A stretch of DNA of 64,000 bases from Pavona decussata (taxonomy: Eukaryota), in contig CDRNST010000318.1 of the NCBI GenBank assembly GCA_977016875.1, forward strand, positions 1,612,001 to 1,676,000. Direction: 5' to 3'. Made by a program: the position numbers and the translations under genes. A model generated the notes under the pieces. That model saw only the letters and a list, made by a program, of their open reading frames with translations, ran no database searches and was not told the DNA's origin. Shown piece after piece: positions 33,601-61,700 of this stretch; the first letter of the stretch is position 1; each line of letters begins with the position of its first letter.

Positions 33601-34896
33601 GCTGAAAATAATTCTCAAGTCCAATGCAGACAGCATTTTCTTAGTTTAAAAGTTTATTGTCAAGTTTTGTCATTGTTATTTGCAGTGGTGTTACCATTTA
33701 TGAAGCCCATATTCCAGTTTTTTAGCACCTTCTTACTTCAGCTTGGTGCTACCAACCGAGCAAGATCTCTACAGTTCATGTTGGACACAACAAATGAGGT
33801 GATTCAGCTGAGAAGGCAGACTGGAGCTTCCCAGGTACCTATTGGAAATAAATGATGACGCTTCATTTACCTGAACTTAATTACTCTTGGTTGTCATTGT
33901 GTTAGTGTCTTGAGTCTCTTGTGTTTTTTTTTTTTTTTTTTTGCCACAAACAACAATTACAGATGGAAAAAAATGATGAAAATTGACGAAAGAAAATAAA
34001 TGGCGAGGAAACCTGAAAGAAACCACGAGGCTTATAAAGTCAGGCTTCCTCACTTTTAAAAAATAGCTATCTTATATTAGAATTACAATATGGACTTATG
34101 ATAATTAACTTTGACCGCGCACACGTACACACACGCACACACACGCACACACATATTAAGTAAGTTAGTTGAGAAATACAGCCTTACAGAAGTTAATACC
34201 TGGAGAGAAGAAAATCTTTAAGCTTTCTTTTAAAAGAAGCGGTGGAGGGAGAACTAGTTATGTCAGAATTTAGCGAATTATAAAAGTTTGGACCTTGAAA
34301 GTAAATTGAAAACTTCCTCGTGTTCGTTCTGCACAGTGGCAAGCGGAAGGACTGAGCATTCCTAGTATTATAATTATGGATTTGACTATTCAGTAAAAAA
34401 AAGGTATTGAATTTGGAAGGGAGTGTAGAGTTCTTGAATGAAAACATAAAAGTACCTAATTGAAACGAATGGATATCGTGAAATTTTAAGAGTTTAAGTT
34501 CCTTAAAAATAGGGCCAGTATGGGCAATGTATGTATCTAACTTTAAACAAACCATTTCCAGAAAAAAAGAGAGTAGTTCTTCTGTATTGGGTGATATTGA
34601 AGTCAGGTGGAGATAATAGTTTTCTTCATTTTACTTGTTTGAAGAGGAAAGATCTGTTAGAACTAATGCTTCGTGCGGAGGTCACTGACAGCGAAGGGCG
34701 ACCAGTTAGCAAGCTTAGTGATGAAGAAGTTCTGGCGCAGTCCTTCACATTTATCTTAGCTGGCTATGAGACAACAAGCAACGCTTTGGCCTACACAACG
34801 TATTGTCTGGCGATGAACCCTGATGTGCAAGAAAAACTCATTGACGAAATTGACAATGCTGTTGGGGATAGTGTAAGTACATTGCAAACTAAGTGG

Positions 34897-34941
<45 letters not shown>

Positions 34942-36603
34942 CGATGATGATAAGGGCAACATTGACAGTGAGGATGATGATGTTAATGATAGTGGTGATG
35001 ATGTATCAATGATTGGTTATCTCCTGGGGGGTCCCCTAGGAAAGAAGACCTTTTTATGGAGATTTGAATGATAAATTGCCCAGTATGGAGGGGGGAATGA
35101 GGCTTGTGTCTTACCCTGCAGGGAAAATATCAGCCTTTGTAAAACAAGAGGCCTTGCTCTAGTTGTTCTAAGTGAAGGGGAAGCAGATCACTGCACTTGA
35201 AGTTTCCTGGATTCATCTTGTGCAATGTGCTCTGAAGAGCACAATGACGGCAGATTTTGTTCATGCAAATCCATCCAATGTGATATATGCGTGCTATGGT
35301 ACCACAGTTCTTGTGATATGTTTAATGAAGATGATGCTGACCAAAGACGGCCTGGTAATTAAGTTCACTTTTTCTGTTATGACCCTCGGGGAGGGGGGAG
35401 GGGGGGGCAATGTCTTAACTTTGATCTTCTCAATATGTTCCCTTCCAAGACAAGAAAATTAGAACTTTCTGATGCTACCTTGCAGGAAAGTCCAGACTAT
35501 GATACAGTTCAGAATTTGGAGTATCTGGACATGGTGCTGTGTGAAGCATTGCGCCTGTACCCTCCTGCATTCAGGTATGAGACATCCCTTGTCCCAGCTC
35601 TGCTTTCCCAAACTCTGATTTTATTTATAGACAGAATGAAATAACTTGATCCAAGTTACTGTTTGTTTGTTTCATTCTATTACACCATAATTAAAGTAGT
35701 TTGACATATTTTTCTTTACATTGTTTAAATTTGATCTGTTACCTTTTTGGCTCACCCAGGTTCGGACGTGTTTGCAATGAAAGCTGTACATTAAATGGTG
35801 TGCACTTTAAGAAGGACATGGTGCTAATTGTTCCTGTGTACTGGTTACACCGTGACCCAGAATATTGGCCTGATCCAGAGAAATTTGACCCTGACAGGTA
35901 CAAAATACTTAATGCATATAATATTGAAATGCATAATTGAATGACCGATTGACTCACTGACTGATTTTTTGCAGATTTACAAAAGAGGCAAAACAGCAAC
36001 GAAACCCATATTGTTATCTTCCATTTGGCACTGGGCCGCGAACTTGCATTGGAATGAGGTTTGCATTGATGGAGGCAAAGATGGCACTGGTGCATTTGCT
36101 CAAGCGGTTTAGATTCCAGCGCTCTGAAGACACTGAGGTAAGGTCTACTTCGAAGTTTAACTCATCATTGACAAGCAGGTTTTTCAATTTGTGCTCTAAT
36201 GCAGATTCTAATTGAAAAAGTCCTCCCAATAATTGTTTTCAACTTAAGGCATAAGCTGGTTAAAAATAAGTGAGAGTGCTCGAGACTTTAAAAGCTCAAG
36301 ACAAATTGAAGGACCTGGTCATTCAAAACCAATACTACGTGGAAATTTGTCTGTGAAATCCAAATTGCTTCAAATTAACTCTTATTTGGCAAACAGACTC
36401 CCCACATGACAAAAAGTCCTGTGTTTATTTTTTGGTCTTGACGCAAATTCTGAGAATTGGCCTGATTTTTGCTTATTTAAGCTGGGTCCTTCGTCTATTT
36501 AATAGCTGATTGTATCTTTTTTCAGGTTCCTCTCGAACTTCAAGCATCAATAACAATGGCCCCAAAGAATGGGATTTATGTGAAACCCATTCTGAGGGCA
36601 TGA
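27664..36603 (+). CDS. Cytochrome P450, CYP3 clan (CYP3A-like); 13 exons, ~513 aa
   Basis: Exons 27664-27755, 29474-29570, 29667-29725, 29998-30100, 30477-30593, 31710-31798, 32929-33068, 33686-33834, 34645-34872, 35486-35574, 35760-35897, 35975-36137 and 36526-36603. N-terminal TM anchor, PGPAPWPFVGN, WKRIR, AGYETT, EALR, PDRF and heme motif FGTGPRTCIG. Confidence 0.95.
28014..28273. mobile_element. MITE of the AGGGAGCTTAAGCAACGACG family
   Basis: Right end cgtcgtcgttgcttaagttccct; a sister copy at ~46702-47062 carries both ends. Confidence 0.55.
31191..31553. mobile_element. Nearly fully palindromic MITE (AATAGRCC ends)
   Basis: aataggcccttctccaaaatgg / ccattttggagaagggtctatt TIRs with a central hairpin acgtttgtatgactggggg...cccccagtcatacaaacgt. 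Confidence 0.8.
31570..31660 (+). mobile_element. Decayed tRNA-derived SINE head
   Basis: A-box-like tgtaacttaatcggtagagtag and B-box-like gggtttgattct; no intact cloverleaf. Confidence 0.5.
32038..32403 (+). mobile_element. GGACGGTGCCTACT-family MITE
   Basis: Shares internal sequence with the elements at ~49188-49590 and ~59002-60177. Confidence 0.6.
32408..32884. mobile_element. piggyBac-like MITE
   Basis: (A)TAA-CCCTTTAACCCCCAAG ... CTTGGGGGCTAAAGGG-TTAA: CCC/GGG termini with a TTAA-type target site. Confidence 0.75.
33924..34555 (-). mobile_element. 5'-truncated LINE 3' end with poly(A) tail, antisense in CYP intron 8
   Basis: ORF HTGPIFKELKLLKFHDIH..HNYNTRN..SIYFQGPNFYNSL..FKRKLK is typical of a LINE ORF2 C-terminus; (CA)n at ~34118-34153; poly(T) at 33924-33942. 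Confidence 0.8.
34897..34951 (+). repeat. (GAT)n microsatellite
   Basis: About 18 units directly after the exon 9 donor. Confidence 0.95.
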
Positions 36604-38533: not shown

Positions 38534-42137
<3,604 letters not shown>

Positions 42138-42485
42138 TCAAAATATTGTAAAAGATTCCAATGGCGTTACGTGTAACCTCGTTCTCGTTTGAAACAAGCT
42201 CGTTCCACTCCTTCCCGGTTGGACCAAATCGACGCCACCCCTGCCCCCCTCTGCAACACCTCAATCAAGAATTTCTTGAGTAGACAGTTTGGTGTCGAGT
42301 ATCGCTGTATATTTTTTACGATTTGTGCTCTATTGTGCTGTTGTGAATGAAAATATACAGGGGAAATACGTCTGCGTTCGCAGGCTAGCATGTTAGCAAA
42401 CCGGGTTTTTTAATGTACGAATAGCCTCCAAACTGGTTTTCTACTGCACAAACCCGGTGTACGTATAAATAAAGAGGCTGCACTG

Positions 42486-42664
42486 AGTGGAACCTCTTTA
42501 TTACGGACACCAAGGGGACAGGAATAAGTGTCCGTATTATAGAGGTGTCAGTTTTAGAGAGGTAGGCTTTATATGGATTTCGGTCTCCCAGGGATCAAGT
42601 GAACTGTCCGTAATAGAGAGGTGTCCGTATTATAGAGGTGTCCGTAAGGAGAGGTTCCACTGTA
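42486..42664. mobile_element. Tc1/mariner-type MITE with internal GTGTCCGTATTATAGAG repeats
   Basis: agtggaacctc ... gaggttccactgta; related elements at ~16420-16592 and ~43682-43874 (TACAG...CTGTA). Confidence 0.65.
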
Positions 42665-43386
42665 GCAAAAGAAAAGTACGAGGAAACCTAGACTTGCTAC
42701 AAGTCGACCTCTTAAGTCATATAAAAAAGATTTTCGTAGCGAGCGAAGCGAGCGAGACCTCATTAGTCAACAAAGTTCTTCGAAGCGAGCGAGAAAAACG
42801 AGGTCGTGCAGCGACCAAGCGAGCGAATTTTAAAGGACTTTTAGAAAGGCTAGAGGACACCTAGAAGCAAGATGACTCCGCGCCTTATATACCGTCCCCT
42901 CCCTTTACTTTTTAAGCAGTTCCTTAACCAGTTGGCTTCACGTCCATTAGTCAATATGCTTATGTTACATGGCCCAGAATGTTCATGAAAAAATGTTCAT
43001 TTAAATTATTTCAGGGGTTATGAATTAACGAAGGGTGATGTCAAGACGTTTTATTTGCACATTAACTATTTGTGTAAAATTCATGTCGGTAATTTATGGA
43101 CAAGTCATATCCAGTGACATGATACAGGATCTCTTTAAGGTAGCAGATGTTTTGGAAATAAATAGTTACGTTTTATTTCCCCTGTCATTTTTAGCATACT
43201 GAGTTGATAAAGTTCAACGCCTCCTTAACCGATCACAGTCCCAGATTCTGGTTCGGATTCTTCAGTACTACGATCGTGGCTCAACAATTATAGAATTTTG
43301 AGGCGAAGTTTTTCAGTAATTAATAAAAACAAAGGACACGGTTGTAGATATTGCTGGCGAAAAATCTTCGGAGAGGTACCGAAGAA

Positions 43387-43433
43387 ATGGCTTGCAAGTT
43401 TACCATTACTTGCAGGAGAGATCATGAAGTCAG
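43387..43433 (+). CDS. Candidate alternative first coding exon A1 of Dispatched-like gene 1
   Basis: ATG..MACKFTITCRRDHEV + AG|GTAAAA; phase 2 matches the exon at 48687. Confidence 0.55.
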
Positions 43434-45720
43434 GTAAAATTAACGGCTTAAAGTTATCTATAAACGTTTCTAAGAGAAATAATTTTCGATTCACGGAGAA
43501 TTATAGCTAAACACGAGTTACCATATCATCTATCTTCATCTGAGTTACTGCTGGGAACCTGCGACGATCCATTTTCTTACTCCATATTTAATTAACACCG
43601 AAGCTTACAAAGAACGGTTAAAATCGCAGTGCATCAACCCGCCGAATCACCATCACACATACAGCGAGCAGTCAGCCGGTTTACAGTTAACTCTCGCCTT
43701 GCGGACACCTCGCTATTACGGACACCTCAATAATCAGACGGACAGCAGCTAAATCCCGGGCAAAAATATACTACAGACGTTTGGCTGAAATAAATTCCCG
43801 CTATCACGGACTCTCGCTATTAAGGACACTTACTCTCGGTCCCGAGGGTGTCCGCAATAAAGGAAGTTGGCTGTATTTGCGACTTGAAGGGCGTGAAAGT
43901 AGAAAAACAAATAGAAATGATTGATTGTTATCTATTGCTTGAATTGTAAATTAGCTCCAAGTAGTACTCATCCTTTTTCTTTTATTTTTAAGGGGATAAT
44001 GTTGGAAAATCTAAGTGCGAACCCGACAAATAAGCGCTTGTTCATTGAATAAGAACTGCCGCATTTTTCTCTAAAATTGACAATGCAACGAAAACTGCAA
44101 CCGCCTGAATTACGTTACCATTTTTAAAAGTTTAAATGATCCTCGAGAAATATTAGCCAAACACCACCAAAATTACTTCGTAATTTATTTAGAAAAGTAT
44201 ACATCCGTTCATTGTTTGGTTCAGGGTTCTTCATTTTCTCTAGCAGACGGTTTTTCTTTTAAATTTTAATAAATTTTGGACAAAAGTTTAAAAATTACCA
44301 TTTTAGGCTAACTGAACATAAATTTTAACTACCTAATAAAGGGGCTTGTCAGCCTTAACGCCTACGTGTTATGATAAATAGTGTTTACTTACCAAATAAC
44401 TGAAATTTATAGGAGCCCACGACCTCTTAAAGAGTTAGTTTTTTTTTTACAAATGAAATTTATTTCTTGGCAAGTCACTGAAACTGAAATTGAAATTTCT
44501 TTTTCGTTCACAAAACTATTGTAATTGTCATAGAAATGTCGGTTATGTATTTCTAGAAGTAACTTATTCCTTCACAGACCAATTCAAATTATCTTCTTAG
44601 ACTTCCTGCAGACGTCTCCTGTTCCCTTTATTGCACGCAGGCTAAATTATTTGTCCGCGGCGTAAAAGTCAGGTGTTGTCGGTCTTAGGGACTATCATTC
44701 CTGACAATTTGTCCAGGGGGTATTGAGTCTATTATTTAATGTCTTGAAGATTCATCTTAGCTTTAATTTTTTTGGCAGCAGCTGGACCGCTGATTATTTT
44801 GTGGTTTTCATTTAAAACAATGATGCTCTTATATTGCAGATTCAATTTGAGTTTGACAAAGATTACTGACTCTGTTCAAAACGCACAGTTTTCCTCTGTG
44901 TTTGAATGGGCTGAACACAGAAACTTATTTACAGGTATAATTTAAACTGTGCCATTGCATCATAAAATTTCTCTTGAAGTCAACCGCCCAATACGTCATG
45001 TATCTGTGTACAGTGGTGTTCAGCTGCAGTGCCCCGTGGTGGTGGTGGAAAGAAGAAAAGGGGGGGGGGGGGTGGGGAAGGTTGGCCCTGGGCAACTACA
45101 CAAGAGGGTATGGACTTCCTCTCTCTCTCGTACGTCACAGGGAGACAATTTCTCCGAAAGCTTTGCAAACTCTTTGAGCACAGTTAATGGTATGAACAAA
45201 AGGAGTGCCACCAGTTACCTGCAGTCAGGCGTAATTTGTAGTTGTTTGTTTTTCAAACAACTAAAAGGAAGAGGAGAGTTGAAAGCGGGAAGATTCATTA
45301 AAAGTTAATATATTCATGTTAAATTCATTTCGCATGCAATATTTACCAGCATGTTCTTGAAAAAAATATACTTATTTAAATTATTTTAGGGATTACGAAA
45401 GACGGAAGTCCATGGCAGCGTATTACACATTAAATTGTTCCCATTCAAAGAACACTTTGAAGAGCAGCGCAGGTGTTGATTCCTGTCAATTCTATTTGCA
45501 CGCAGAGCGAAGTCGCAGTCATTTTTACGGCTTAAAGCCAAGCTTCTACTAAACACCACAATCCATTTTGGTTACGTCTTTAGAAATATAATCATATTGG
45601 TTCGATGCTTATTGAATTTAACGAGGAATTGTTCGACCAATGTAAGACTGGAAATATGTAAACGGTATTGGTAGATCACCGGTTGTAAGTGGACCATCCT
45701 CCAAGACAGGCGGCGAAAAT

Positions 45721-45767
45721 ATGACTTCCAAGTTTGTCATTACTTGTAGGAGAGATCGTGATGTCAG
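45721..45767 (+). CDS. Candidate alternative first coding exon A2 of Dispatched-like gene 1
   Basis: ATG..MTSKFVITCRRDRDV + AG|GTAAAA; paralogous to A1, phase 2. Confidence 0.55.
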
Positions 45768-47311
45768 GTAAAAAGAAAGTAGCTTTAGGTTATTTATAAA
45801 CTTAAGCAAAAAAAAAAAAAATTCGAGTCGGGGAGATATTTTGCGGTATATGAATTAACATGCGATTTTCCACCGAGTTTTCAGCGGGAAACCTATATGT
45901 TATTCACTGTCAGTCGCTTTTCACTGAAGCGCTCAGAAAATGGCAGAAAACACGGTACTCTTTACTTTTGGAGGTGAATAACCGACAAAGAGTCGAACAG
46001 AGAGGAGCGTGAATTCTCCAGTATCTGTAATTTGAATTTTACTGATTCATCGGGGTTAAGCGAGAAGATGCGCCTTTTACAGTAAATAGGTTTAAGAAAG
46101 GTACATAAGTTTGTCATTATTTCAATTAATGTCGGAAAAATTCTGAAAGCTTCATTTTGTTCCCTTTTGAGTTTTTGCATAATAAACGCCGCAGCTTGCT
46201 CTGGATTGAAAATGTAAGTCAAAACAGACCAAGCTACGGTCTAATATCCATTTTAAAATTAGTTTTAAAATTAGACTGATTTCGAGGCTTATCGTTGTTT
46301 TAGCTAAAAAGTCAACAATACCAGAAAACTTTTTTTTAGAGAAAGGCATATCCGTTTAATTTTTGGTTTAGGGGTTTTCAAGGAAAGAGAAATTTCTTTT
46401 CATGATAAGTGTACAGATACCAATCTACTGCTTTTGTCTGTGGCATGAATTGTATATCGGTTAAAGGGCCCCGGATAAGTATCCACGGATATATCACGTC
46501 CAATTTATTTGTTCCCAGAACTATTGAATTCAGTGCCTATGCCATTATCCTTACAAAAAAGGAAATTGTTCAACTAGGACAAATATTCTGGTGTGAGGCT
46601 AAATCGTATCGATTTGTCCATTTGGCCGCAATATAATGGTTCCATTAATTCGCGCTTAAACAACTGAAACATTAGCTGCAGCCGGTGCTTAGTCAAAAAC
46701 TAGGGAGCTTTTGCAACGACGGCGACGGAAACGAGAACGTCAAAAAAGCAATAGGTTTGATAAGTAAAACAACAACTCTGCACGTGCATTACACTTTTTG
46801 ATACACTTCTCTGCCGTCACTGCACGACTAGGACGTGAAATTTTCTGACGGGACGTTTTCTGCAGGACGTAAACACACGACGAATTTTTGTTTCTCTTCC
46901 TAAAGTTGGGTGCAGTCTCCAAAAATTCAGCTCCAGGAAATTTCACCTGCATTTGACATTGACAGCGAGTTGGAATAATGGTGGCGACGTTTGAAAAAAT
47001 GCGAATTCATTTTAATAGTAACGTTTACGCTGCCTTCGCCGTCGTCTTTGCTCAAGCACCCTCCAGCTGATACGACCTGAAAAAACTAAAATGACGATCC
47101 GTGCTACTGGTTGTCAACCCGAGAATTGCATCTCATTTCTTCTTTCTCTTGAAAGGTTTTCGATTCTTACTAATGGGACAATATTACTGTCCATTAACAG
47201 CCAACGCGAAAGAAATATAATTACCGATTAGTTTCAAGTTTCCCAAAGGATTAACGACTCTGTTCAAAATACGCTTTTCTCTCGCGGTTTAACCTACTGT
47301 GTTAATATTTG

Positions 47312-50300
47312 ATGGCGAAAGCCCAACCAGCTGAACACAGAAGGTAATTTACCGAATTTCTGGTTATTGGAACTTGTCCTTCAGCAACTCTTTTGACAAA
47401 AGCCAAAGAAATTACCTAATTTAAAATTTGGCAGGCTGGTACCCATACCAGGGCACTAAAAAGGAGGTTGGTCAGGCATTCGTTTCTTCTTTCGTCAATT
47501 TAGCGCCCACCATTTTGTTTAAATGTATGCAGGGAGGCATAGGGAAAAAGCGCGGGAATTTGGCGACATGTCAAGCTTTCGTACATTGTAGGCAGTGTCC
47601 ATTAGGCCTTTCCCGACTGCGTTGGTAAAATCCTAAAGAAGTGGTCGAAAAAAATGCCCCAAAACGTGCCCAAAATGTCTAAATAGTGCTCAAAAGTTGC
47701 TCAAAAAGTGAAAAGTTTCCGCTAAGATTTTCGCTAATATGCACATTTTTACTACAGTAGTAACAATGTATCTTACAATCTATTTTTCATAACGTTAACT
47801 CAACGGGTTCTTGCGGAAGGTTGATAAAATATAAAAGATGTTTACTTACATAGAAAGTACACTTTAGCAATTCTCTATTACTAGTCGGTAATGCGATTTT
47901 CAGACTGGCGGATTTGTGTTTATTTAGCGGTCTTCATTCTGGTTTTTTTGTTTTGGCTGTCAGTAGCACGGATGAGGATGTCTTTTTTTCAGTGATGTGA
48001 ATGTGTTATGTAAAAAAACTTTACTATAAGAGGGTTTGGGTTAGGACCTAACCCTAACTCTGTACACCTAGGGAGTGGGGTACTCAGGTACATTATTGAC
48101 AAAGGGCTATAATCAAAGACTCGTTAGACCAACAAAAGCAAATATGGTTCAGAAATTAACCCCAAAAGGAGTTAAGAAGGAATCAGCTCCTGTCATCGCT
48201 TATTTACGTGAGGACTCCCCCCCCCCCCCCCCCCCAAACCTGGGACTGTATAAACACAAAATGTCTTCCAAAATGACATGGTTATTTTTCCTGGTGGTAC
48301 AGGTATGGCTCTACTGTGTCAACTGTATATGCTTTGACTGCAGAGCTACCAACCTCACCCCCTCAACATGCTGATGAAAATAGCAGTCATAATATTTTAT
48401 TCACGGAGCTTGTCTAGAAGTCTACTTTGGAGATTTTTTGATCGGTTAAAAAACTCTGCTGCGCCATGTTTTTTCAACCAACTTGTGGGTGTTTGGAAAT
48501 TGTATGAAACACTCTTTCTTTTATGAGGATATGGAGCAAATGTACTGTTTACTATAGAATCATTTCCGTAGCCTTAAGACCTCTGATGAGAACAACCTCT
48601 GATATTCCCTGCCACTTTCTTAGTTTACTTTCCATCCTGCACCAAGGATGATACTCGGTTAATGAAAAATTTTATTTCCTTTTTAGGTTTACCAAGTATG
48701 ATTTGCTTGCACTCTTGCTGGCCATCTTCATTCCAGTGATTGCTATAGTGCTGACTATGGTGGCAATTCTGCCGGCATTGGGAGCACCACCACTACCAAG
48801 CTTTGAGAAACCTACAAAAGTAAGCCAGTTTAAGGTTACTAGCAGCTAGGCCTGAGCATTATTAAAGTATTTTAAATTGTAATGAAGTATTCCCTAAAGT
48901 CTGCAGAATAGACCTATTCGGCTAATGCAATGTTGTACCCAATTCAAATCCTTTGGGGATAAAATGTTTTGTTCTAAGTATTTCCATATCATTTAAATGT
49001 GAATGCTACATTATAATGCAGATGCAATAAACAAAGAATCTTAACCCCGGGGGATCTGAATTGGGGTACAACATTGAGTTAGCCGAATGGGTCTATTGCA
49101 TTGCTCTTAGTAATTAAATATCTTATAGCCTATGCTACTCCAGTTTAATATATTTAATTCAGTTTTCATTTCTAAAATTGTCGCTCTTAAGGACGGCACC
49201 TCCTTTTGCTACTGCGCATGTATTCTGCGCATCTCATGATGGTCTGAAAAACTCTGATTTCTTAAGGACGAAAGCCACGCAATTCAAAGGTATTTTTGCG
49301 CAGTTTATGACTATGCAGGAAAAGAAGATTTTAGTAAGGGCTATTGAAATCCAAAAAGCAAATAATTGGGGGTAACCATACATTTTTTAGTAGAAAATTA
49401 AGCTACAGTTTGGGAAAAAATGCATACACGAACTATGTATTTGAAAGCTTTTTAGCATTATGTTATCTCTGAAAAATGCTTGGTAACCCCCTCTTTTCTT
49501 TCAGGATTAAAGTAGCTCTTACTAAGATCTTCTTTACCGGCCTAGTCATAAAGCGTGAAAAAAAACTATTGTCCTAGGAGGCACTGTCGTAAATTTTTTT
49601 TTTTTTGGTAATTCAACCAGCTCCTTGCCAGAGGTTTGAATTAACTGATTTTGTGGAAGATAGTTGTAGCTCCTTGAGAGCTTTATTCATCATTGCTTAA
49701 TATTTCCCAGGGATTTGAACCAAGAGGCACGGAACTGAGTAACCAGATTGTGACGGATGGGAATGTTCGAAAAGCACTGGGAAAAAAAACCCTCTTACGG
49801 AAACCTCCTAGAGCACAAGAATTATCTGAGGACAAAGCAAATAATGGTCTTGGTTCAGGCAAGCGCAAACGGCGCTCAGTGCAAAGTTCCCTTCAACCTC
49901 CTCTCTACGAAGGTTCTGTAATTGAGTCCATGGTGTTTGTCTACAAATCCTCAGACCCACATAAAAACTTGTTTGAGGCAAGCAAGCTTAAGACCATTTG
50001 CGCCATGGACACTAACATTGTACGCTTCCACCCATCTTTCAAGCAAAACTGTCTTTATTTTTTTAATAATGGATCTAACAGCCGGGAATGTTACTCAAGT
50101 TGGTCTTTGGGAAATTATGTCGCATTGCTCAACAACCGTGGAACTTGTCAAGATATAACTGATGATGATGTGTCAAAGGTGAAAGCGCTGCTGCAGAATT
50201 GTTCGTCTTATTTTGTCAAGCAGACGCTCAAGGAAGACTGCCGATATCCATTGGCAAATGAAACAGCCAGCTCAAACTGCCCATCAGTACCAGCGCACTG

Positions 50301-53300
50301 CATCAAACACAATGCAGTGTACAACATTTTCCAGTATCTTGTAGACAACGAGTTCATGACTATACCGGATCAATCTTTCCTCAAATACACTTTATCCATG
50401 CCACCTGTCTACTACGGGGTGGAGTTTTTTTATGAAGAGTTGTACAGCAAGTTGAAGGGCAGCACCAATGTCAAAGAGGGAGTTGAAATAGCGGCATTTA
50501 GATTTTGGAATTTTAAGTATGACAAATTTGCAAAGGAGCTCTTTGTTGAGATAATATTCCCTGCTCTTGCAATAATTGTTGTGTTTGGTGTCATGTGGTT
50601 TTTCCTTGGTTCTTTTATTCTCACTTTCTGTGGCCTTTTTTGTGTAATTTATGCAATTGGTCTTTCGTATTTTCTTTATAACGTTGTTTTCGGCATGGAT
50701 TTTTTTCCCTTTCTTAATGTCCTCACATTTGTCTTTTTGGTGGGCATTGGAGCAGATGATGCATTTGTGTACTATGACATATGGAGGCAGACACGGGCTG
50801 CAAACCCTAATGCAAACATCATGCAATTGACATTGAAGACTTTGCAATATTCTGCACTTTCCATGCTGGTTACTAGTTTGACAACAGCATCAGCATTTTT
50901 TGCTAGTATATCTTCCACCATTACAGCCATCAAGTGCTTTGGAATATTTGCAGGAACATCCATCTTGACAAACTATTTGCTTATGATAACATATTTCCCA
51001 GCCGTTGTAGCTCTGCATGAGAAGTGGGTGATGAAATACAGTGATGGTGAAAGCTCAGATGTTTCGCCTTCAGGTGAGCTAACAGATGTTGGAACTGCTG
51101 AAACTGTGGAAGCGCCAAAAGCACAAGACATGTCAGAAGGCAGAGAAGCGAACAAAAGCCATAAAACTCAAGAGAAGACAAGCTTCTGTATTTTACAGGT
51201 TGCTGATTTTCCATGCTCCCTTGCGGTATCAGCAATGGGTGCTGTGCAAAGATTTGGCTCCAAGATCTTTGGTCGGTGGTTGCCGTTCGTGGTTATCAAG
51301 TTTCACTGGATTTGGATAGCCCTGCTAATCTGTCTTACTGCTGGCTTTTTGTGCGTCAACTTTGTAAAACCTGGTCTTCACCTGCCGGAGAGTGATGAAT
51401 TCCAAGTATTTTCTGATTCGCATACACTGGAAAACTACAACTTAAACTACAAGAGATTCTTTCGGTTTGAGCAAAGTGGAAGTATGGAGATACAGCTGAT
51501 CTGGGGGATCAAACCTGTTGATAATGGTAACCACTTTAATCCAGATGACAAAGGAACCCTTGAATTTGATGAATTGTGGTCGTTGGGTGGTCTCCTTTCC
51601 ACAGAGGGGCAACAGTTCCTGCGCTCTCTATGTTCATCCGCTGAGAAGCAGTCATTCTTTGCTGCATTTTCTGGGGATTTGGGATGTCCAATGGAAGCAT
51701 TAATAACAGCGTGTGCCACTGGCCCCGATGCATGTTGTGGAAAGAATGCTAGCTTTCCTTTTCCGGCTGGTGTTGCTGAGAAATGTCTTCTAGCATTTGC
51801 ATTAAGTGGAGAGGAAACAGGGTTGCTGTTTGACGCTAATAGTGGAAAAGTGAAAGGTTTTAGAATGGGGATCATTGCAAACCAATCATTTACAACAGCC
51901 TTTTCTGTGATAGATGGTTTCTATGACACAGTAAATTCTTGGGTTAAAACTGAAATGTCCAAAGCACCAGCTGGATTGCAAAATGCTTGGGCAGGCAGTT
52001 GGGGGTTCAAGTTTTATGGCCTACAGATTGGCCTCTCGGAGGGCACCTATTCGTCATTAGGCATATCAGTAGCTGTATCGTTTGTTGTAATGTTGCTTAC
52101 AACACTCAACATCTTCATCAGCATCTATGCGATCATCACCATTATTGGAGTTATTGCAATCACTATTGGATCTCTGGTGCTGGCAGGCTGGCAGTTGAAT
52201 ATTTTAGAGTCTATTGTGATGTCAGTGGCTGTGGGGCTTTCAATTGACTTCACCATGCACTATGGCGTAGCGTACAGGTTGGCTCCTGATAAAAGCAATA
52301 AAGAAAGCAGGGTGCGCTACTCACTAGTGCACATTGGATCGGCAATCACCATGGCAGCGCTGACAACCCTTCTTACAGGTGACAAATTTTTTCATATTCT
52401 CTCTCGTTGCTTTCTATTCTTTTAAGCTGTTGACAATAATATTGCCATACAACATTGCATAACTCAGTATTATGTGGTTCCAGAAAATATCCTCCCTCCT
52501 ACCATAGAAGGTCATTACAAATTAAAGGAGATAAGGGGCCACAAGGACTAACGTTTTCCGAAAGGAAAGTATGAAGCTACGTTGTAAATTTCAGTGTAAT
52601 GGATATTTTTTGGAACAGTGCACTGCAGCTAGTCACAGAGCAGGGTACATTGACCTAAATTTGAATTTTTTTTTTCATAGCAAGACTAAGGGTGCGTTCG
52701 ATTGAACCTAATAAGATTATTTCGGGATAGAAATAGATACGATGCCTACCAAAAATCACTCAAAATGGCTCTTAAATTATTGCCGGTGTATCAGCGAAAG
52801 TTTTCAGATATATCTTCCCAAATTCACGTGAAAAGAGAAATCTAATAGCTATTCCGCTCAGTTATAGTCTTTTTCCGGAATATGGTCAATCAAACGCAAC
52901 ATTATATTCTGCAACCATCAGACTTTCTTAAGCCAGGTTTAATTATGCTGTATGATTTGTCGTCCTGGCAGTGTTGGAGCACAAATTGTACAGTGTATTT
53001 AGACACCCAATTTCGATTTTGAATTTTGAAGTTTGAGCAAAAGAGAGGCTGTCCACAGTCTAGTGACATCACCAAGTCTTCAGTTGCATGAGCAATGTCA
53101 GGCAAGACAGAATGCCTCTGGACTAGAATTAATTGTCTGTTTCCTTTGTTTCAGGCTTGATGATGATGCCTGCGACAGTTCTGGCGTACTTTCAGCTTGG
53201 TCAATTCTTGATGTTGGTCATGGTTTTCAGTTGGTTTTATTCCACCTTCATTTTCTTATCCATCTGTGCTGTGATTGGTCCAAAGGACAATTTTGGACAA

Positions 53301-53504
53301 CTGAGCATCTCTAATCTGTTTCGTCGATGTTGCCGAGGCAAAGATGAAGTCTCGAAGGAAACCGCTACTGATAAGAAAGAGCATGTTATCTTAAACCAAA
53401 GTGCTGTCGGTGATCGGGCTTCAGAACAAGTTAACGTTGCTACCTTGAACCCAAATGCTGTCAGTGATGTGCCTCCAGGAAAAGCTTATGACAGCATGCT
53501 GTAA
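47312..53504 (+). CDS. Dispatched-like 12-TM SSD/RND protein, copy 1 (~1060 aa)
   Basis: Exons 47312-47343 (one candidate first exon), 48687-48819, 49711-52378 and 53155-53504. Motifs PSFEKPTKGFEPRGT, SWSLGNYVALLNNR..C, GIGADDAFV, VTSLTTASAF, GLSIDFTMHYG and YFQLGQFL. Confidence 0.9.
48908..49097. mobile_element. AATAGACC-type palindromic MITE present only in Dispatched copy 1
   Basis: atagacctattcggctaa / ttagccgaatgggtctat TIRs; the paralogous site at ~58860 is empty. Confidence 0.8.
52690..52900. mobile_element. Harbinger-like MITE shared by both Dispatched copies (also ~63405-63630)
   Basis: gggtgcgttcgattga ... tcaatcaaacgcaac. Confidence 0.6.
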
Positions 53505-53733
53505 AGGTTAAATGATAACTGCGATACTATATAGAATGTGTGTAACTACTACTAACCGAGATTATCCACACCGTGAAAAAGGAGTCTTGTTTTACTTCAC
53601 GAGGGCTACTGTAAATATCACAATTCCCTTGTCTCGATCTATCTGCAGAGAAAGTTAATTGTTTCTCTGATCAATTGCTAAGAATCCCCTATTGACTGTA
53701 AATAGGCCGTTGATTTATAGCAAGCCAAACTGA

Positions 53734-54157
53734 GGGTACGTTCCTTTATGACCCAGGCCCCAGTTGTTCAAAAGGCGGATAGTTTTGTCCACTGGATAGG
53801 TCGCTATCCGGCAGATAAAATGTGGGCAAGATTTTCCCAATAGCCCTATAATTTGTGGATAGATTAGAAGCATATGTGAAATTAAAGTATGGGATTGTGT
53901 GGAAAACTTGCCAAAGGCGTTAGTTGGAGTACATTTGCTCCGCTGGATAGTGACTTATCCAGTGGATAAAGTTATCCACTCTTTGAACAACTGGGGCCTG
54001 ATCAGGATCAATGATCCAAGATCACTCGGATCAGGGTGCATCAAGGGAACCGACGAATCCACTCTGTGTAAGGATTCGTCGGTTCCTTTGATGCACCATG
54101 ATCCGAGTGTTCTTGGATCACTGATCCTGATCTGGATCATCCCAAAGGAACGCACCC
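53734..54157. mobile_element. PIF/Harbinger-like palindromic MITE carrying a nested hAT-like MITE (53754-54000)
   Basis: TGA-GGGTACGTTCCTTT ... AAAGGAACGCACCC-TGA (3-bp TSD, GGG/CCC ends); the inner element is caggccccagttgttcaaa ... tttgaacaactggggcctg. Confidence 0.8.
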
Positions 54158-55679
54158 TGAGATAACGCATTAGTGCTGGGAACGTTTAATACTCGCTAGT
54201 TTTGTCAGTGCTGTTTTGTTTTGCAGTTTATTTTTATTATTGTCATAAGTTAATATATTGAACCTTTGTATTCATTTTTAAATATAATTTTTTGAGTTTA
54301 TTTTATAGGCAAATTTACTCTCCTGGGTTGTTCACTTTGTATTGATCATTTCTAATATAAATGTAAATTAAGGTTGAAATGCCACTGCAAAAACCGTGAT
54401 CGATCAATCTTGCTCTACGTTGGATCAAACAGGATAGTGATCAGTAAAAATCGATAAAAATAGGTCAAGTAGAAATGAAAGTCAAAAGGACCACTGCAAG
54501 GACTGATCAAATAACGTGAAAGGCTAGAGTGGACGATATTTCGACTGGCCAATACCAGTCTTCATCAGGTTTATTAGTAAAACTCACGAATTCATAGAAT
54601 ATATATGTTGTAAAATAATAACCGGAAGTACTATGATATGACGTGGTATGGTGTAGCTAGATAAGCAAACAGAAAAACAAAAATTGTATACCAGATTTTA
54701 GTCCGTCACGTTTGTTTTAAAATGCCTAGAGGCTCTAGCCAACCCTTGAGCCTTAAAATCAAAATTGACTATCGTAGCTTCATTATAAGCAGTAAAGGTG
54801 GAATCCTTAGAGGAAGACACGAACTAGGCTACTTTGTGAAGAACCTTTTTGTACCACTCCTCATACAATGGTTTGCCTTCGCAGAAAAGAAGAGTATGAA
54901 GTGTTTAGTGAATGTAGTTAATTAAGATGAAACTATTATTGCGTTCGAGGTAGAAAGAACGCACTCCTATGCAGTTTGGAATCGAGATTGCATTGTCATG
55001 ATGGGATAGTAGATCGATGTCATCAACGAATGGATGTGGTATCCCCATATCCCCCGCCGATTTTTGCGGGGGCGGATGACATCATCACCAACTTGGCAAA
55101 GTTGATTATGACTACTTGGATGCGGGCAAAATAGTGCTCTGATTGGACTTACTACAAGGCAACCAGCTGTTAATATTGTACCAGAAGATGTGCCAAATTG
55201 ACTTCAATATTGTGCATGTTGTATGTATTAATTTATTCCTTTTATCTTGAGGGCCGTAAGTTAAAAAACTGTAATAGACTCATAAATGATAATAGGTTTA
55301 ATATTACGCCTCTCCCTTTAAATAAATTGTATTGTATATCACCCAAGTTTCAATGACTTGTGTACACGTCACCTGACAAAGGTTTGACCTAAGAAAATAT
55401 GACAGTGCCTTGTCCTGCTTTCAGCAAGAACGGTAAATCACGAAAGCTTTAATGTGAGCTTGTGATTCACCTTACGTGCAGAGCAACTTGCGCTGAATGT
55501 CTTTCACCTGTCATGAACGTGAAATGCCGAGAACGTGTGGTACTTGACCGCGAGCTTTTACTTCAACGGTAATTCCACATTGTGCAAGTTGAACGGGTTG
55601 GAATAACTACAAAGGTTACTAGGTCAGACAACGTAAAAAAGTGCATATAATTAAACTTCCGGTAATCCGGGTTAATAAC

Positions 55680-55710
55680 ACCCATGACGTCACATCTCTT
55701 ATAAGCAGAA
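55680..55710 (+). promoter_or_regulatory. Putative promoter of Dispatched-like copy 2 (CRE + TATA-like)
   Basis: TGACGTCA at 55685-55692 followed by TTATAA at ~55699-55704, about 60 bp before the ATG at 55766. Confidence 0.5.
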
Positions 55711-55765
55711 GGTGAAGTTGAAATCTGTGATTGAAGCTCGTGAGCCAAGCGGTTGTCATACAGAA

Positions 55766-58700
55766 ATGGGTAAAGTAAGGGTTGGTTGCTCGCCTAATTT
55801 AAGGTAAGAGCTTTGGTTTTCGGTAGGTTTTGACAGAAAATTCGTTGCTTGAGCTAGACTTCAGTTAATTGTAGTTTAAGTATTGACTCAGCTGTTGTTA
55901 TTGATCTAGAGCGCTTTTCATGCACTATGGTATTGCTAAGATTTCAGCAAATTGTAGGATATGGTAGAGATTGTGCTGTAAAATTTTGTTCTTTCGTTTG
56001 AAAATATCTTGCGCCCTGTTAAGTCGATCGAATTTAAGTCTACAAGTTGCAATACGATTGTTTTGCCTCCCAGGGATTTGGTACAAAAATTGAAATAAGC
56101 TGAAAGGGGGAAGTATCACGCAAATTTGCTGTCATTTCAAAACCCAAAAATGTTTGTCTGTCAGCAGAAACAACGAAATAATTGTCAAGTTTGTTATAAA
56201 TTATCACCCCAGTGCAATAAAACTGTCGATTAGTGCCTCTGGCCAGAGACAGAGTAGGCCGGTATGGATTGAAACTTGAAAAATGTCAGGCTTATGTTTT
56301 TCAAGTTCTCGCATTTTTGTTTCCAAAATGCGCTAGAACAGATCACGAGTTGTTCCTTTCAAGAATTGAGTTGATTTATTTCCTCTTGTCATTCTAGAAT
56401 TATTTGTCAGCTGATTGAAGGTCTTATTTCATCATTTTTTACCAAATATATCAAAAAACCCATGATACTTCCCCTTTAAGTACAGAATATTTATGCAACC
56501 GTTGCTGGGCGTTTGTGAACAACAAGAATGATTATTCTTTCCTGAAAAGAATCCGAGAAATAGCAGAATGACTTAAAAATATACTATATTCAATGCAACG
56601 TATTTTTCAAAACTCTTTCTGATCATTTAAGTCCCGGTTTGGACGCCGTGGGAAAAAAAAATAATCGCCCCCGGCTATCATTCGAGGAAATAGGGCTCAT
56701 GTGTGTAGCGTCTAAATCAAAGCCGGTCCACAGCCGTTATTTCCAGCTAAGCCAGGCCGGAAAAACGGCTGAGCAGATCTTTATTGGCCGTTCTGAATTG
56801 ATTCAGACGCCGTACTTCAAATGAACTTAATTCATTGAAGCTTAATTCGATTCGGCTCATATGAAGTACCGAAAGGGGGCAATTATTCGAGGGAGGCGAT
56901 TATTTCAAATATTTCTCACAGGAAGTCGTGCCCTAAATATTTTGTTTTATTATACCGTTAAATAAAAAAAAACTAATCACTTCAAAAATAAACCGAACAT
57001 GGGCTTTTCAACTGTTTCAGTTTCATTGATTAATCAGTGTTCAATGTCAATGTCTTCGGCATCAGAGCCTGAATCATCACTGATCACTTTTACTGGACCA
57101 GACTCCATTTCAGCTTCATCATCCAGATTTACCGCTATGCAGATCCCTGCAAATGGGTTGGTGCGAGGAGCTGTGACGATGTCAGTTAAAGACTGTGGGG
57201 GGGGGGGATTATTTTCAACATTTTCGTCAAAGGGGGGGGGGGGGGCGATTATTCGAGAGAGGCAATTAATAGAGGGATGCCTATTATTCGAGGAAATACG
57301 GTAGTATGCTTCTGTGAATTAAGTGCGGCGTCTGAATAAATTCAGCCACGTTTAATTAATTTAAGTGGATCTAAATTTGAATTTGATTCTGCTCATGTAA
57401 AGTACAATGTCTGAACTGGGCCTAAGGATGCCAAAATGTCCATTTGCTGCAAACTGTTCGAGAAGACTTCAATTTTATTGAAGGAAATTATTAAGCTGCC
57501 CTTCAACAAGAATTTGTAATCATGTTGTGATCTGTGACACCATGACACCAAAATGTTAAGCAGTTAAAGGGAGAAACAATAATTTTGTTGATGCCTGCAG
57601 CTCAGATTCACCTTACACTTCTTTTGTGCTCTTGTTACTATGGTCATGGAATCTTTGATTGTGATAACACCTTTTTACTTCTTTATTTTTGACAAACTGG
57701 CACTTTGCAATAATTCATAGTCATATAATATCCCAGTCTTCTCTTTCTGGTCATGCGCATTACTGTAACATAAATACAAGTGCCGTAATGTATTTACAAA
57801 GACATGAAGTTACATCCTTGAATGCTTTAGAACAGAACAAAGCATTTTAAGACCTTTTCTATTTGTTAATTACAAAATTGTGCCACCAAACTGGTTTACC
57901 TGCTGTAAGCAACCACCCAAAAGATCAAGCCCAGGTCATCACTTATTTGCCAAGCATCCGTAATTTCTAACTTGTTTATAAATGAGCGAATGGTGAAAAC
58001 AGCAAGAACAGTACTGATACTGAATCCTGCAAGGGACTGTGTACCATACATCACTGGCATCTTTTACAAACACAAATTTATGTAAAAACCAGGAAGAAAG
58101 CACTAAAATTTGGAGGTATATTTGAGGTTGACTTGAACTTGAGTCAGGCTCAAACTTGGCTTGTACTCCATGTACAAGCAAACTTGTTTGACCTTTGTAT
58201 GTGCGTCATGTTTATTTGCATTCAGTTTTTCAGGGATGTTATGATGTTGTCATTTTGTTGTGGTAATGTGGGTGTCTGTATCACAGGTGATGTTTTATTT
58301 CTGTGATCTGAATGTCTTATGACAAAAACCTTACTGTGATAGGGTTTGGATTATGGCCTAACCCTAACTCTGTACACCCAGGAGTGGGGAGGGAGGGGGG
58401 GTCCCGGGGGGGGGGTACTCAGCTACATTATAGACAGAAGGGTATGAATGATGTCAAGTTGTCAGTCCTACAATTAAAGGTTGTCTAGTCTAACAAAAAC
58501 AAAGATGATCCAGAACTTGACCCCAAAAGTCAGAAGGAATTAAGGAGGAATCAGCCCCTGTTAATGAAAAATTTTATTCCCTATTTAGGTTTACCAAGTA
58601 TGATTTGCTTGCACTCTTGCTGGCCATCTTCATTCCAGTGATTGCTATAGTGCTGACTATGGTGGCAATTCTGCCGGCATTGGGAGCACCACCACTACCA

Positions 58701-61700
58701 AGCTTTGCGGACCCTACTAAAGTAAGCCAGTTTAAGGTTACTAGCAGCTAGACCTGCAACCTTTTTCCCAGGAAGAGGAGAGACCCTGGAAAAGGTTGTT
58801 AGGTCTGAGCATCATTGAAGTATTATGAATTCTTGTCAAATATTCTCTGAAGTCTGCAGAATTTCTTTGTTCTTAGTAAAATTCATCTTATAGCCAAATG
58901 TTACTCCATTTTAAAATATTGATTTCATAATTGAATAATAAAAATTATTTATTTCACTTTCTGAGTTTTTATTTTTCAGTTCATTTTTAAAATTGTTGCT
59001 ATTAAGGACGGTGCGTCCTTTTGCTACTGTCCATGTATTCTGCGCATCTCATGATGGTCCAAGAAACTCTGATTTCTTCAGGTTACCCTATACCTTCAGA
59101 GGTGTCTTCAGAGCTGTCTAGTGTCCAAGTGATGTAGCACGTCTGGTTTAAACTGTAGATACCTGACCCCTTATATCAAATTAAAGTTTATAGAGCTGGC
59201 TATCAAACTAAACCAAGAATTTTGAAATAAAAGGAATTGCCGAATTTTTAGTGCTGTTTTCTCGAATGAATTTTTTCACTTGGAGGAGCCACTTCCAAGA
59301 GCTAAAACTCAAATGGAATTTGTTCGTTTGCCTTCAAATTCGAACAGTAGCTAGTTCAACACATAAACAACAAAAACGTTTGTGTCTGCGAATTTTTCCT
59401 TTCGAAATATTTTTTTCTCCTAGAGCGATTTTTGTACGATCACTCCCCTTTTTTTTTTCATCCTGTTTCGAAAATGCTCTATAACTTTTCATTGCGATTG
59501 AATATGGCAAAACGCAAGCACGTTTTTTTAGCGCTTTGGGTCTGGAAACTGAGGAGCAAATTAAACTAGCAGAAAACAAAATTTGCTTTGACTTGTAGCT
59601 TTAAAAAGGTGATTCAGACGCTCGTATTGAGAGGTCGTGAAAAATTCGACAATTCATTTTATTCCAAAATTCTTGGTATACAGTTGACTCCCGATAACCA
59701 AGTTATTGGGAGTTGACTGTAGTTTGATAGCCTGCTCTACAAGCTTTAATTTGATATAGGGGTTTAGATATCTACAGTTTAAACTGGATGCACTACATCG
59801 CTTAAACGCGAGACACCTCTGAAGGTATATGGTAACCTTAAGGATGAAAGCCTCGCAATTCAAAGGTATTTTTACGCAGTTTATGACTAGGAGGAAAAGA
59901 AGATCTTAGTAAGGGCTATCGAAATCCAAAAAGAAAATAATAATTTTTGGGGGTAACCATGCACTTTTCAGAGAGATTTAAGCTTCAATTTGAGAAAAAA
60001 ATCCATACATGAACTATGACAGTATTTGAAAGCTTTTTAGCACTATACTATCTCTGAAAAATATCTGGTGACCCCCAATTTCCTTTTGGGATTTCAATAG
60101 CCCTTACAAAGATCTTCTTTTTCCTGCCTAGTGTAAACTGCAAACAAATACCTCTGTATTAGAGGGCACCCTCCTTAATACACATTGTAACTTTCTTTTG
60201 CATTGTTCCCCTACGTTATTTTAGTTCCATGTCAATACATTGATTTTCCTACAACACATATTTTTGTATCATTGTAACCAACCGACATGATTTAGTGTTT
60301 TCAAATTAATATATTTTCCCAAACTAAAGCCGTTGAATTTAACAAGATCCTTGCCAGAGATTTGAATTAACTGATTTTGTGGAAGATAGTTGTAGCTCCT
60401 TGAGAGATTTATTCACTGTTGCTTAATATTTCCTAGGGATTTGAACCAAGAGGCACGGAACTGAGTAACCAGATTGTGACGTTTGAGAATTTTTACCAAG
60501 CAATGGGAAAAACACTCTTAGGGTATCCTCCTAGAGCACAAGTATCTTCCCAGGTCAAAGTAAATAATGGTCTTGGTTCAGGCAAGCGCAAACGGCGCTC
60601 AGTGCAAAGTTCCCTTCAACCTCCTCTCTACGAAGGTTCTGTAATTGAGTCCATGGTGTTTGTCTACAAAGCCTCAGACCCACATGAAAACTTGTTTGAG
60701 ACAAGCAAGCTTAAGACCATTTGTGCCATGGACACTAACATTGTGCGCTTGGATCCATCTTTTAAGCAAAACTGTTTTTATTTTAGTGATGGAGTTAAAA
60801 CAGAATGTTACTCAAGCTGGTCTTTGGGAAATTATGTTGCATTGCTCAACAACCGTGGAACTTGTCAAGATATAACTGATGATGATGTGTCAAAGGTGAA
60901 AGCGCTGCTCCAGAATTGTTCATCTCATTTTGTCAAGCAGACGCTTAAGAAAGACTGTCGATATCCGTTGGCAAATGAAACAGCCAGCTCAAACTGCCCA
61001 TCAGTACCAGCGCACTGCATCAAACACGCTGCAGTGTACAACATTTTCCAGTATCTCGTAGACAATGAGTTCATGAGTACACCGGATCAATTTTTCCTCA
61101 AATACACTTTATCCATGCCACCTGTCAACTACCAGGTGGAGTTCTTTTATGAAGAATTGTACAACAAGTTGAAAAGCAGCACCAATGTCAAAGAAGGGGT
61201 TGAAATAGCGGCATTTAAATTTTGGAACTTTAAGTATGACCAATTCAGGAAAGAGCTTTTTGTTGAGATAATCTTCCCTGCTCTAGCAATGATTGTTGTG
61301 TTTGGTGTCATGTGGTTTTTCCTTGGTTCTTTTATTCTCACTTTCTGTGGCCTTTTTTGTGTAATTTATGCAATTGGTCTTTCGTATTTTCTTTATAACA
61401 TTGTTTTCGGCATGGATTTTTTTCCCTTTCTTAATGTCCTCACATTTGTCTTTTTGGTTGGTATTGGAGCAGATGATGCATTTGTGTACTATGACATATG
61501 GAGGCAGACACGGGCTGCAAACCCTAATGCAAACATCATGCAATTGACATTAAAGACTTTGCAATATTCTGCACTTTCCATGCTGGTTACTAGTTTGACA
61601 ACAGCATCAGCATTTTTTGCTAGTATATCTTCCACCATTACAGCCATCAAGTGCTTTGGAATATTTGCAGGAACATCCATCTTGACAAACTACTTACTGA

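Follow-up and report, generated by a model that had tools for sequence, protein, structure and literature searches.

How many short leader exons supply the N-terminus of a coral Dispatched-type transporter is the question raised by the locus described here. The window, i.e., the whole stretch of 64,000 nucleotides (nt) of Pavona decussata that was analyzed (contig CDRNST010000318.1, positions 1,612,001 to 1,676,000 of the forward strand; coordinates below count from its first letter), contains two tandem Dispatched-type transporter genes on the + strand, named gene 1 and gene 2 here, whose exons are 93-96% identical between the genes. A first-pass annotation had proposed that three small exons with an ATG upstream of gene 1 (A1, A2 and B2) are alternative first exons spliced to one shared exon that codes for the first transmembrane segment (TM1). 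It is likely that A1 leads gene 1, that a leader of another class (C) leads gene 2, that A2 is an intact paralogue of A1 of uncertain use and that B2 arose by chance. The idea was partly right: its general form holds for the gene family, while for this locus it is overstated, with one leader proven, one plausible and one probably due to chance. As a gene layout, the arrangement is ordinary. The elements in question are the following:

43195-43433, + strand: A1 exon as seen in RNA, consisting of a 192-nt part of the 5' untranslated region (UTR) and the coding part 43387-43433
45721-45767 (47 nt), + strand: A2, MTSKFVITCRRDRDV followed by a split Arg, with a donor (AG/GTAAAA) identical to that of A1
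47312-47343 (32 nt), + strand: B2, the proposed third leader, MAKAQPAEH followed by a split Arg, ending AG/GTAATT
55766-55803 (38 nt), + strand: C-type leader of gene 2, MGKVRVGCSPNL followed by a split Arg, phase 2, ending AG/GTAAGA
48687-48819, + strand: TM1 exon of gene 1, from the reading of the sequence, from RNA-type contigs that end or join exactly there and from its match to the TM1 segment of orthologues
58590-58722, + strand: TM1 exon of gene 2, from the sequence; 96% identical to 48658-48854

The leader in use upstream of gene 1

Logan contigs from four runs belonging to three studies were aligned to 42900-48880. The coding part of A1 comprises 47 nt (MACKFTITCRRDHEV followed by a split Arg) and ends AG/GTAAAA. 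A1, A2 and B2 are all phase 2, and each is completed to an AGG codon (Arg) by the base at 48687 that opens the TM1 exon; the exon coordinates, donors and phases that had been reported for them are all exact. A 742-nt contig of run X1 (depth 20) matches 43193-43431 and continues with 48685-48820, the joint (43433 to 48687) skipping 5253 nt with GT..AG ends. Moreover, a 218-nt contig of run X12 covers A1 up to 43435 and carries eight more letters, which is compatible with the same A1-TM1 joint. A1 is a genuine coding leader spliced to the TM1 exon. The claim of short phase-2 ATG leaders joined to 48687 is hence upheld by an RNA-type junction for A1 and finds no such junction in the four runs for A2 and B2: none of the contigs links 48687 with either 45767 or 47343, and over A2 and B2 only unspliced contigs of low depth were present. 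Since assembled contigs drop minor variants, the missing A2 and B2 junctions constitute weak negative evidence. Unspliced contigs with a depth of 2-6 are scattered across the intron between A1 and TM1 in all four runs, none of them in 42900-43192, and look like pre-mRNA starting at or upstream of A1. A further record of X12, which links 45826 to 48493 via 39 foreign letters, was discarded as a repeat or foreign contig, the letters being absent from the window and the joint being devoid of splice signals.

The match of the X1 contig ends at 43193, on a strong acceptor AG (43193-43194; 17 of the 20 upstream bases are pyrimidines), and the contig holds 335 further upstream letters, none of which were placed in 42900-43192. 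Additionally, 43195-43386 (192 nt) contains zero ATG as compared to six in the 179 nt just upstream; an ATG-free stretch of 192 nt starting at 43195 is what a real 5'UTR boundary would look like, and suggests one. We consider it probable that A1 is the second exon, entered at 43194/43195 from an upstream non-coding exon. Because A1 appears to be entered via an acceptor, behind no fewer than 335 nt of transcript, "first exon" and "duplicated promoter module" are probably the wrong terms, and the earlier notion of a first exon with a promoter of its own is doubtful for A1, which is probably an internal exon. The upstream non-coding exon may sit in 42140-42900, given that an open reading frame (ORF) resembling PCYT2 lies head-to-head at 41184-42137.

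The C-type leader of gene 2

The 814-nt contigs of runs X9 (depth 112) and X12 (depth 51), which stem from two studies, cover the TM1 exon and carry 32 foreign letters ahead of it that match 55768-55797 with one mismatch. Gene 2 uses the C-type leader 55766-55803, a previously unannotated element with a strong start context that is orthologous to leaders of Oculina, Montipora (isoform X2) and Acropora (isoforms X2/X4). In two coral metagenome contigs reaching ~6 kb upstream, L004 and L005, nothing in the 6 kb ahead of the TM1 or large exon can be aligned except a C-type leader (MAKVRTSCSPNV and MGKKVMCGCWPNL, respectively), and neither A-like nor B-like sequence was found in these ~6 kb. A C-type relic was also looked for upstream of gene 1 and not found.

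Leaders in related corals

The closest named proteins to the genes of the window belong to Montipora, Acropora, Oculina and Stylophora, and RefSeq proteins of the same four genera start with A1-like peptides before the same TM1 exon. These A-type leaders read MARKFVFACGNGVR in Montipora X1, MAPNSAVSCIRDSRVR in Acropora palmata X1, MAGIVCRRNHQVR in Oculina and MMGITCQRNKKIR in Stylophora X1, and the leader peptides of A1 (MACKFTITCRRDHEVR) and A2 (MTSKFVITCRRDRDVR) resemble them. C-type leaders read MGRLKLGCSRKLR in Montipora X2, MGKVRIECSGKLR in Acropora X2/X4 and MAKIIVNCWPNLR in Oculina. The A-type follows the pattern MA.KF...C....VR or similar and the C-type the pattern MG(K/R)...C...LR. 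In all leaders of either type that were seen, a cysteine precedes the junction Arg by 5 or 7 residues. Both types are found on identical TM1 sequence within one species, under NCBI isoform labels of one gene: alternation is annotated in Montipora capricornis and M. foliosa (X1/X2), in Acropora palmata (X1/X2) and in A. muricata (X1-X4), the four isoforms annotated in the latter also featuring one more leader and an in-frame cassette. The Montipora and Acropora isoforms are computed gene models. A Logan transcript (P0130) gives independent evidence of the Montipora C form. Switching between phase-matched leaders is a trait of the gene family in Acroporidae that automatic annotation has already captured; a literature search returned no paper discussing leader alternation in coral Dispatched-like genes. 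A search by protein words from the N-terminal part of P0020 yielded three clusters, none from the species of the window, and one with the TM1 open frame yielded one unspliced fragment.

The Montipora and Acropora proteins, named protein dispatched homolog 1-like, are of the same family as those of the window (65-69% identity over the large exon), and they share its design of an ATG exon of 12-16 codons with a split Arg that is spliced to the TM1 exon, with two or more leaders per gene body. They differ in that one body carries both classes, whereas here the A-type and C-type leaders front two tandem bodies and the A-type is duplicated. Alternative N-termini for one transporter, as proposed in the first-pass annotation, are therefore annotated in these orthologues, while only the A1-TM1 junction was seen here.

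Tandem duplication of the leader region

The A and B elements upstream of gene 1 lie in two repeated units:

42972-45343, + strand: duplication unit 1, with A1 and the B1 relic, colinear with unit 2 and holding a high-copy repeat insert at ~43680-43880
45344-47730 (right end approximate), + strand: duplication unit 2, with A2 and B2, holding a different high-copy repeat insert at ~46716-47050
44861-44934, + strand: B1, a conserved non-coding block that is the paralogue of the surroundings of B2

Local and global alignments revealed a colinear chain of 42972-44934 versus 45344-47354 with offsets of 2321-2420, BLAST E-values of the blocks of 3e-25, 2e-6 and 2e-5, and spacers between the blocks that are ~60-63% identical. 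Judged by these alignments, the ~2.37-kb tandem duplication is real and old, and the claimed duplication of ~2.3 kb with the order A1-B1-A2-B2 and diverged spacers was borne out. A1 and A2 as well as B1 and B2 are paralogous by this duplication, in colinear 2.4-kb units; A2 and B2 are unrelated to each other in sequence, and likewise A1 and B2. With up to three mismatches allowed (<=3), the 34-nt core of exon A was found at exactly two sites in the 602-Mb genome, namely A1 and A2, and this count rules out that exon A is a multi-copy repeat, the refutation that had been envisaged in advance. At high identity, the 200 nt surrounding A1 and the 200 nt surrounding B2 each occur once in the genome. 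Furthermore, exon A is identical at 40/47 positions (85%) between the copies, whereas its flanks within that local alignment reach 195/326 (60%; Fisher p = 4e-4).

At both inserts, contig depth rises into the hundreds to thousands in each of the four runs, and loose ends are numerous; the repeat at 43680-43880 is built of short units containing GTCCGTA and has an inverted occurrence at 42490-42660. An Rfam scan of 42000-49000 gave one match to a microRNA family, far under the gathering score, which was taken as chance.

The first-pass annotation had likened the array to the UGT1A and protocadherin loci. In UGT1A and the clustered protocadherins, every variable exon codes for an entire domain and is driven by a promoter of its own, and use has been proven for many of these exons. 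The likeness lies in tandemly duplicated 5' exons upstream of a shared, phase-compatible downstream exon. By contrast, the variable part amounts here to 10-16 residues rather than a domain, and only one of the proposed exons was seen spliced, seemingly as an internal exon behind a non-coding one, which makes the comparison a loose one.

B1 and B2

B1 and B2 share two exact islands, 44868-44881 = 47256-47269 (14 nt) and 44910-44922 = 47330-47342 (13 nt), which occur nowhere else in the window; their flanks are only ~60% identical and the islands do not lie in a shared reading frame. The ATG of B2 is located in a 32-nt stretch that is absent from B1, and B1 has no GT at the position homologous to the B2 donor. 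B1 had been described as a paralogue of B2 that looks disabled, with the start ATG GGC TGA. The exact islands confirm that the sequences are related; since B1 lacks the 32 nt that hold the B2 ATG, ATG GGC TGA is not a mutated B2 frame.

For the weight of the phase match, mini-ORFs that start with ATG, are free of stops, are phase 2 and end AG/GTR were counted on both strands of the window. There are 45, corresponding to 0.32 per kb without the four named ones. The 5.25-kb intron between A1 and TM1 would be expected to contain 1.7 at the rate of the window or 1.15 according to Markov resamples, and three were observed: A2, B2 and one that had not been flagged, which illustrates the chance background within the intron itself:

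45897-45973 (25 codons), + strand: phase-2 ATG mini-ORF ending AG/GTGAAT

Because such mini-ORFs are expected by chance in this intron, the phase match of B2 carries no weight. In addition, B2 has no Cys and a weak start context (T at -3), no counterpart of it was found among the retrieved coral N-termini or in L004 and L005, and no junction from it was present, so that its proposed role as a third leader exon has little support; that B2 is a coding leader is very unlikely. The similarity of B1 and B2 most likely marks a small conserved non-coding block.

A2 and the alternatives

A2 has lost neither its ATG nor its frame, it still has the conserved Cys, the Arg-Arg-Asp core and the donor of A1, and its start context shows an A at -3. 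Upstream ATGs are present at 45605, 45640 and 45656, in the part of unit 2 that is homologous to the clean A1 UTR, and at the place of the A1 acceptor AG the A2 unit carries a substitution, other AGs being found in this unit at 45505-45506 and 45582-45583. The conserved A tract is short (~43370-43465) and reaches ~30 nt into the intron. The excess conservation of A2 argues for constraint or gene conversion; to go by the pattern of substitutions, A1/A2 conservation looks nucleotide-level, as a short conversion tract would. That A2 is used as a leader at all appears possible, if doubtful. Inclusion of A2 or B2 as an in-frame cassette behind A1 was considered as well and rejected, as the frame would be kept only by acceptors poor in pyrimidines in the case of A2 and by none in the case of B2.

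It is highly improbable that, as first proposed, A1, A2 and B2 each act as an alternative first exon with its own promoter and so provide three N-termini, despite the fact that each of them is an intact ATG exon of phase 2 with a good donor, that relatives use several leaders (four isoforms in A. muricata) and that the exact B1/B2 islands suggest some constraint: no junction of A2 or B2 was seen, A1 is probably entered via an acceptor and would then not be promoter-proximal, and B2 is at chance level, without Cys, with a weak start and with no orthologue. Dropping B2 as an exon, A1 and A2 could still be mutually exclusive leaders, the choice being made either by splicing of an upstream exon that both share or through a separate start for A2, with A2 being used in stages or tissues that were not sampled. 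This explanation would account for the retained ATG, frame, Cys, Arg-Arg-Asp and donor of A2, for its 85% identity against 60% in the flanks and for the A at -3, and candidate AG acceptors are available at 45505-45506 and 45582-45583; the lack of an A2 junction in four runs, the three upstream ATGs, the substituted acceptor AG and the excess of non-synonymous over synonymous changes speak against it, and we regard it as unlikely. Alternatively, A2 is a dead relic that owes its conservation to a short, more recent gene-conversion tract from A1 and not to selection. The short tract running ~30 nt into the intron and the decay of the UTR part agree with this, and synonymous and non-synonymous sites are both depleted of change, as conversion predicts; against it, seven differences in 47 nt mean that any conversion is old, and the ATG, donor and frame have survived since. 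A dead relic appears rather unlikely as well.

The preferred assignment of A1 to gene 1, of the C-type leader to gene 2 and of uncertain use to A2 has to be held against several points that weigh against it. The RNA nature of the four runs is a guess of a tool, and assembled contigs drop rare variants. The A1-TM1 junction is fully shown by one contig in one run only, and this contig cannot strictly tell gene 1 from gene 2: since the first 119 nt of both TM1 exons are identical, with four differences confined to the last 15 nt (48806-48816 versus 58709-58719), the assignment of A1 to a gene body is ambiguous. The 335 upstream letters of the contig are unread and unplaced and could be an assembly chimera, and no contig lies over 42900-43192 in any of the four runs. 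Finally, five codons differ non-synonymously between A1 and A2 (six base changes) and one synonymously; because non-synonymous changes outnumber synonymous ones, conservation of the A exons is not clearly at the level of the protein.

Gene bodies and their duplication

The bodies of the two genes are represented mainly by two large exons:

49711-52422 (~2.7 kb), + strand: large exon of gene 1 with the first extracellular domain, the sterol-sensing domain and further TM segments, from Pfam, PDB and motifs
60437-63142, + strand: large exon of gene 2

Matches to the Pfam families Sterol-sensing (55 bits), Patched (51 bits) and MMPL were all above the cut-offs in both genes. In the PDB search, the best matches were DISP1 (E = 9e-172) and Drosophila Dispatched (2.5e-98), with PTCH1 and NPC1 being weaker (1e-9 to 1e-7), which places the bodies closer to Dispatched. 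A pattern search found the motifs GIGADD and GLSID in both genes, which, by analogy with DISP1, would be the TM4 GxxxDD and TM10 GxxxD motifs. RKRR followed by Ser is located early in the first extracellular domain, at 49864-49875 in gene 1 and 60587-60598 in gene 2, and recurs in most coral homologues; it represents a candidate furin-type site. A furin-type site of this sort is needed for the activity of DISP1. By homology, the gene bodies are clear Dispatched relatives of the kind named Dispatched homolog 1-like, sharing with vertebrate DISP1 and Drosophila Dispatched the sterol-sensing domain, the GxxxDD/GxxxD motifs and the basic RKRR/S site. They differ in the cytoplasmic N-terminus, which has 11-16 residues in the corals and >120-240 in the retrieved vertebrate DISP1 proteins. 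The coral relatives have a full length of ~1030 residues. The genes of the window are members of a coral-expanded paralogue clade, and a more distant second coral Dispatched-like clade exists (39% identity).

The duplication of the gene bodies comprises 47934-55348 and 58250-66074, the second copy running past the window on the same contig. The copies are not a simple head-to-tail repeat: a 2.9-kb spacer (55349-58249), inside which the C leader lies, separates them, and the duplicated segment contains none of the small 5' exons or leaders. The leader intron of gene 1 has a 465-nt stretch (48194-48657) that is absent from gene 2.

As to the surroundings, the minus strand carries at 41184-42137 a single ORF of 318 codons that contains two cytidylyltransferase-like domains and resembles ethanolamine-phosphate cytidylyltransferase (PCYT2); this ORF is oriented head-to-head with Dispatched-like gene 1, ~1.25 kb from the start codon of A1. 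At ~29460-36210 on the + strand, open frames resemble cytochrome P450 exons, with the heme-binding signature FGTGPRTCIG at ~35961-36212.

Proposed leader usage and its meaning

Following this, we propose that transcription of gene 1 would start upstream of 43195 and that A1 would provide the start codon, 15 residues and the split Arg. The A1 donor would pair with the TM1 acceptor 5.25 kb downstream, A2 and B2 being removed as part of the intron. The leader would form a minimal cytoplasmic N-terminus with a cysteine as its one invariant feature, and this cysteine may be S-acylated. The alternation of A-type and C-type leaders that the family displays seems to be split here between two bodies. 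No leader is part of the duplicated segment, and the C leader sits in the 2.9-kb stretch that separates the copies. It is tempting to extend this to a history in which the ancestral gene had both leaders, the body copy (47934-55348) came to lie between them and each daughter was left with one leader (subfunctionalisation), the A leader then being duplicated once more, with A2 being stage-specific and the S-acylated cysteine tuning sorting; taken as a whole, such a scenario is quite improbable.

For annotation, the analysis provides corrected starts for gene 1 (A1, probably preceded by a non-coding exon) and gene 2 (55766-55803). It also calls for caution with very small ATG exons of matching phase, since chance alone produces roughly one of them per 3 kb in this genome. 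The function of Dispatched is the release of lipid-modified Hedgehog ligands, and corals have an expanded, unstudied Dispatched-like clade. If the N-termini of these transporters are swapped by the choice of leader and their cysteine is lipid-modified, this would offer a simple handle on transporter sorting or regulation.

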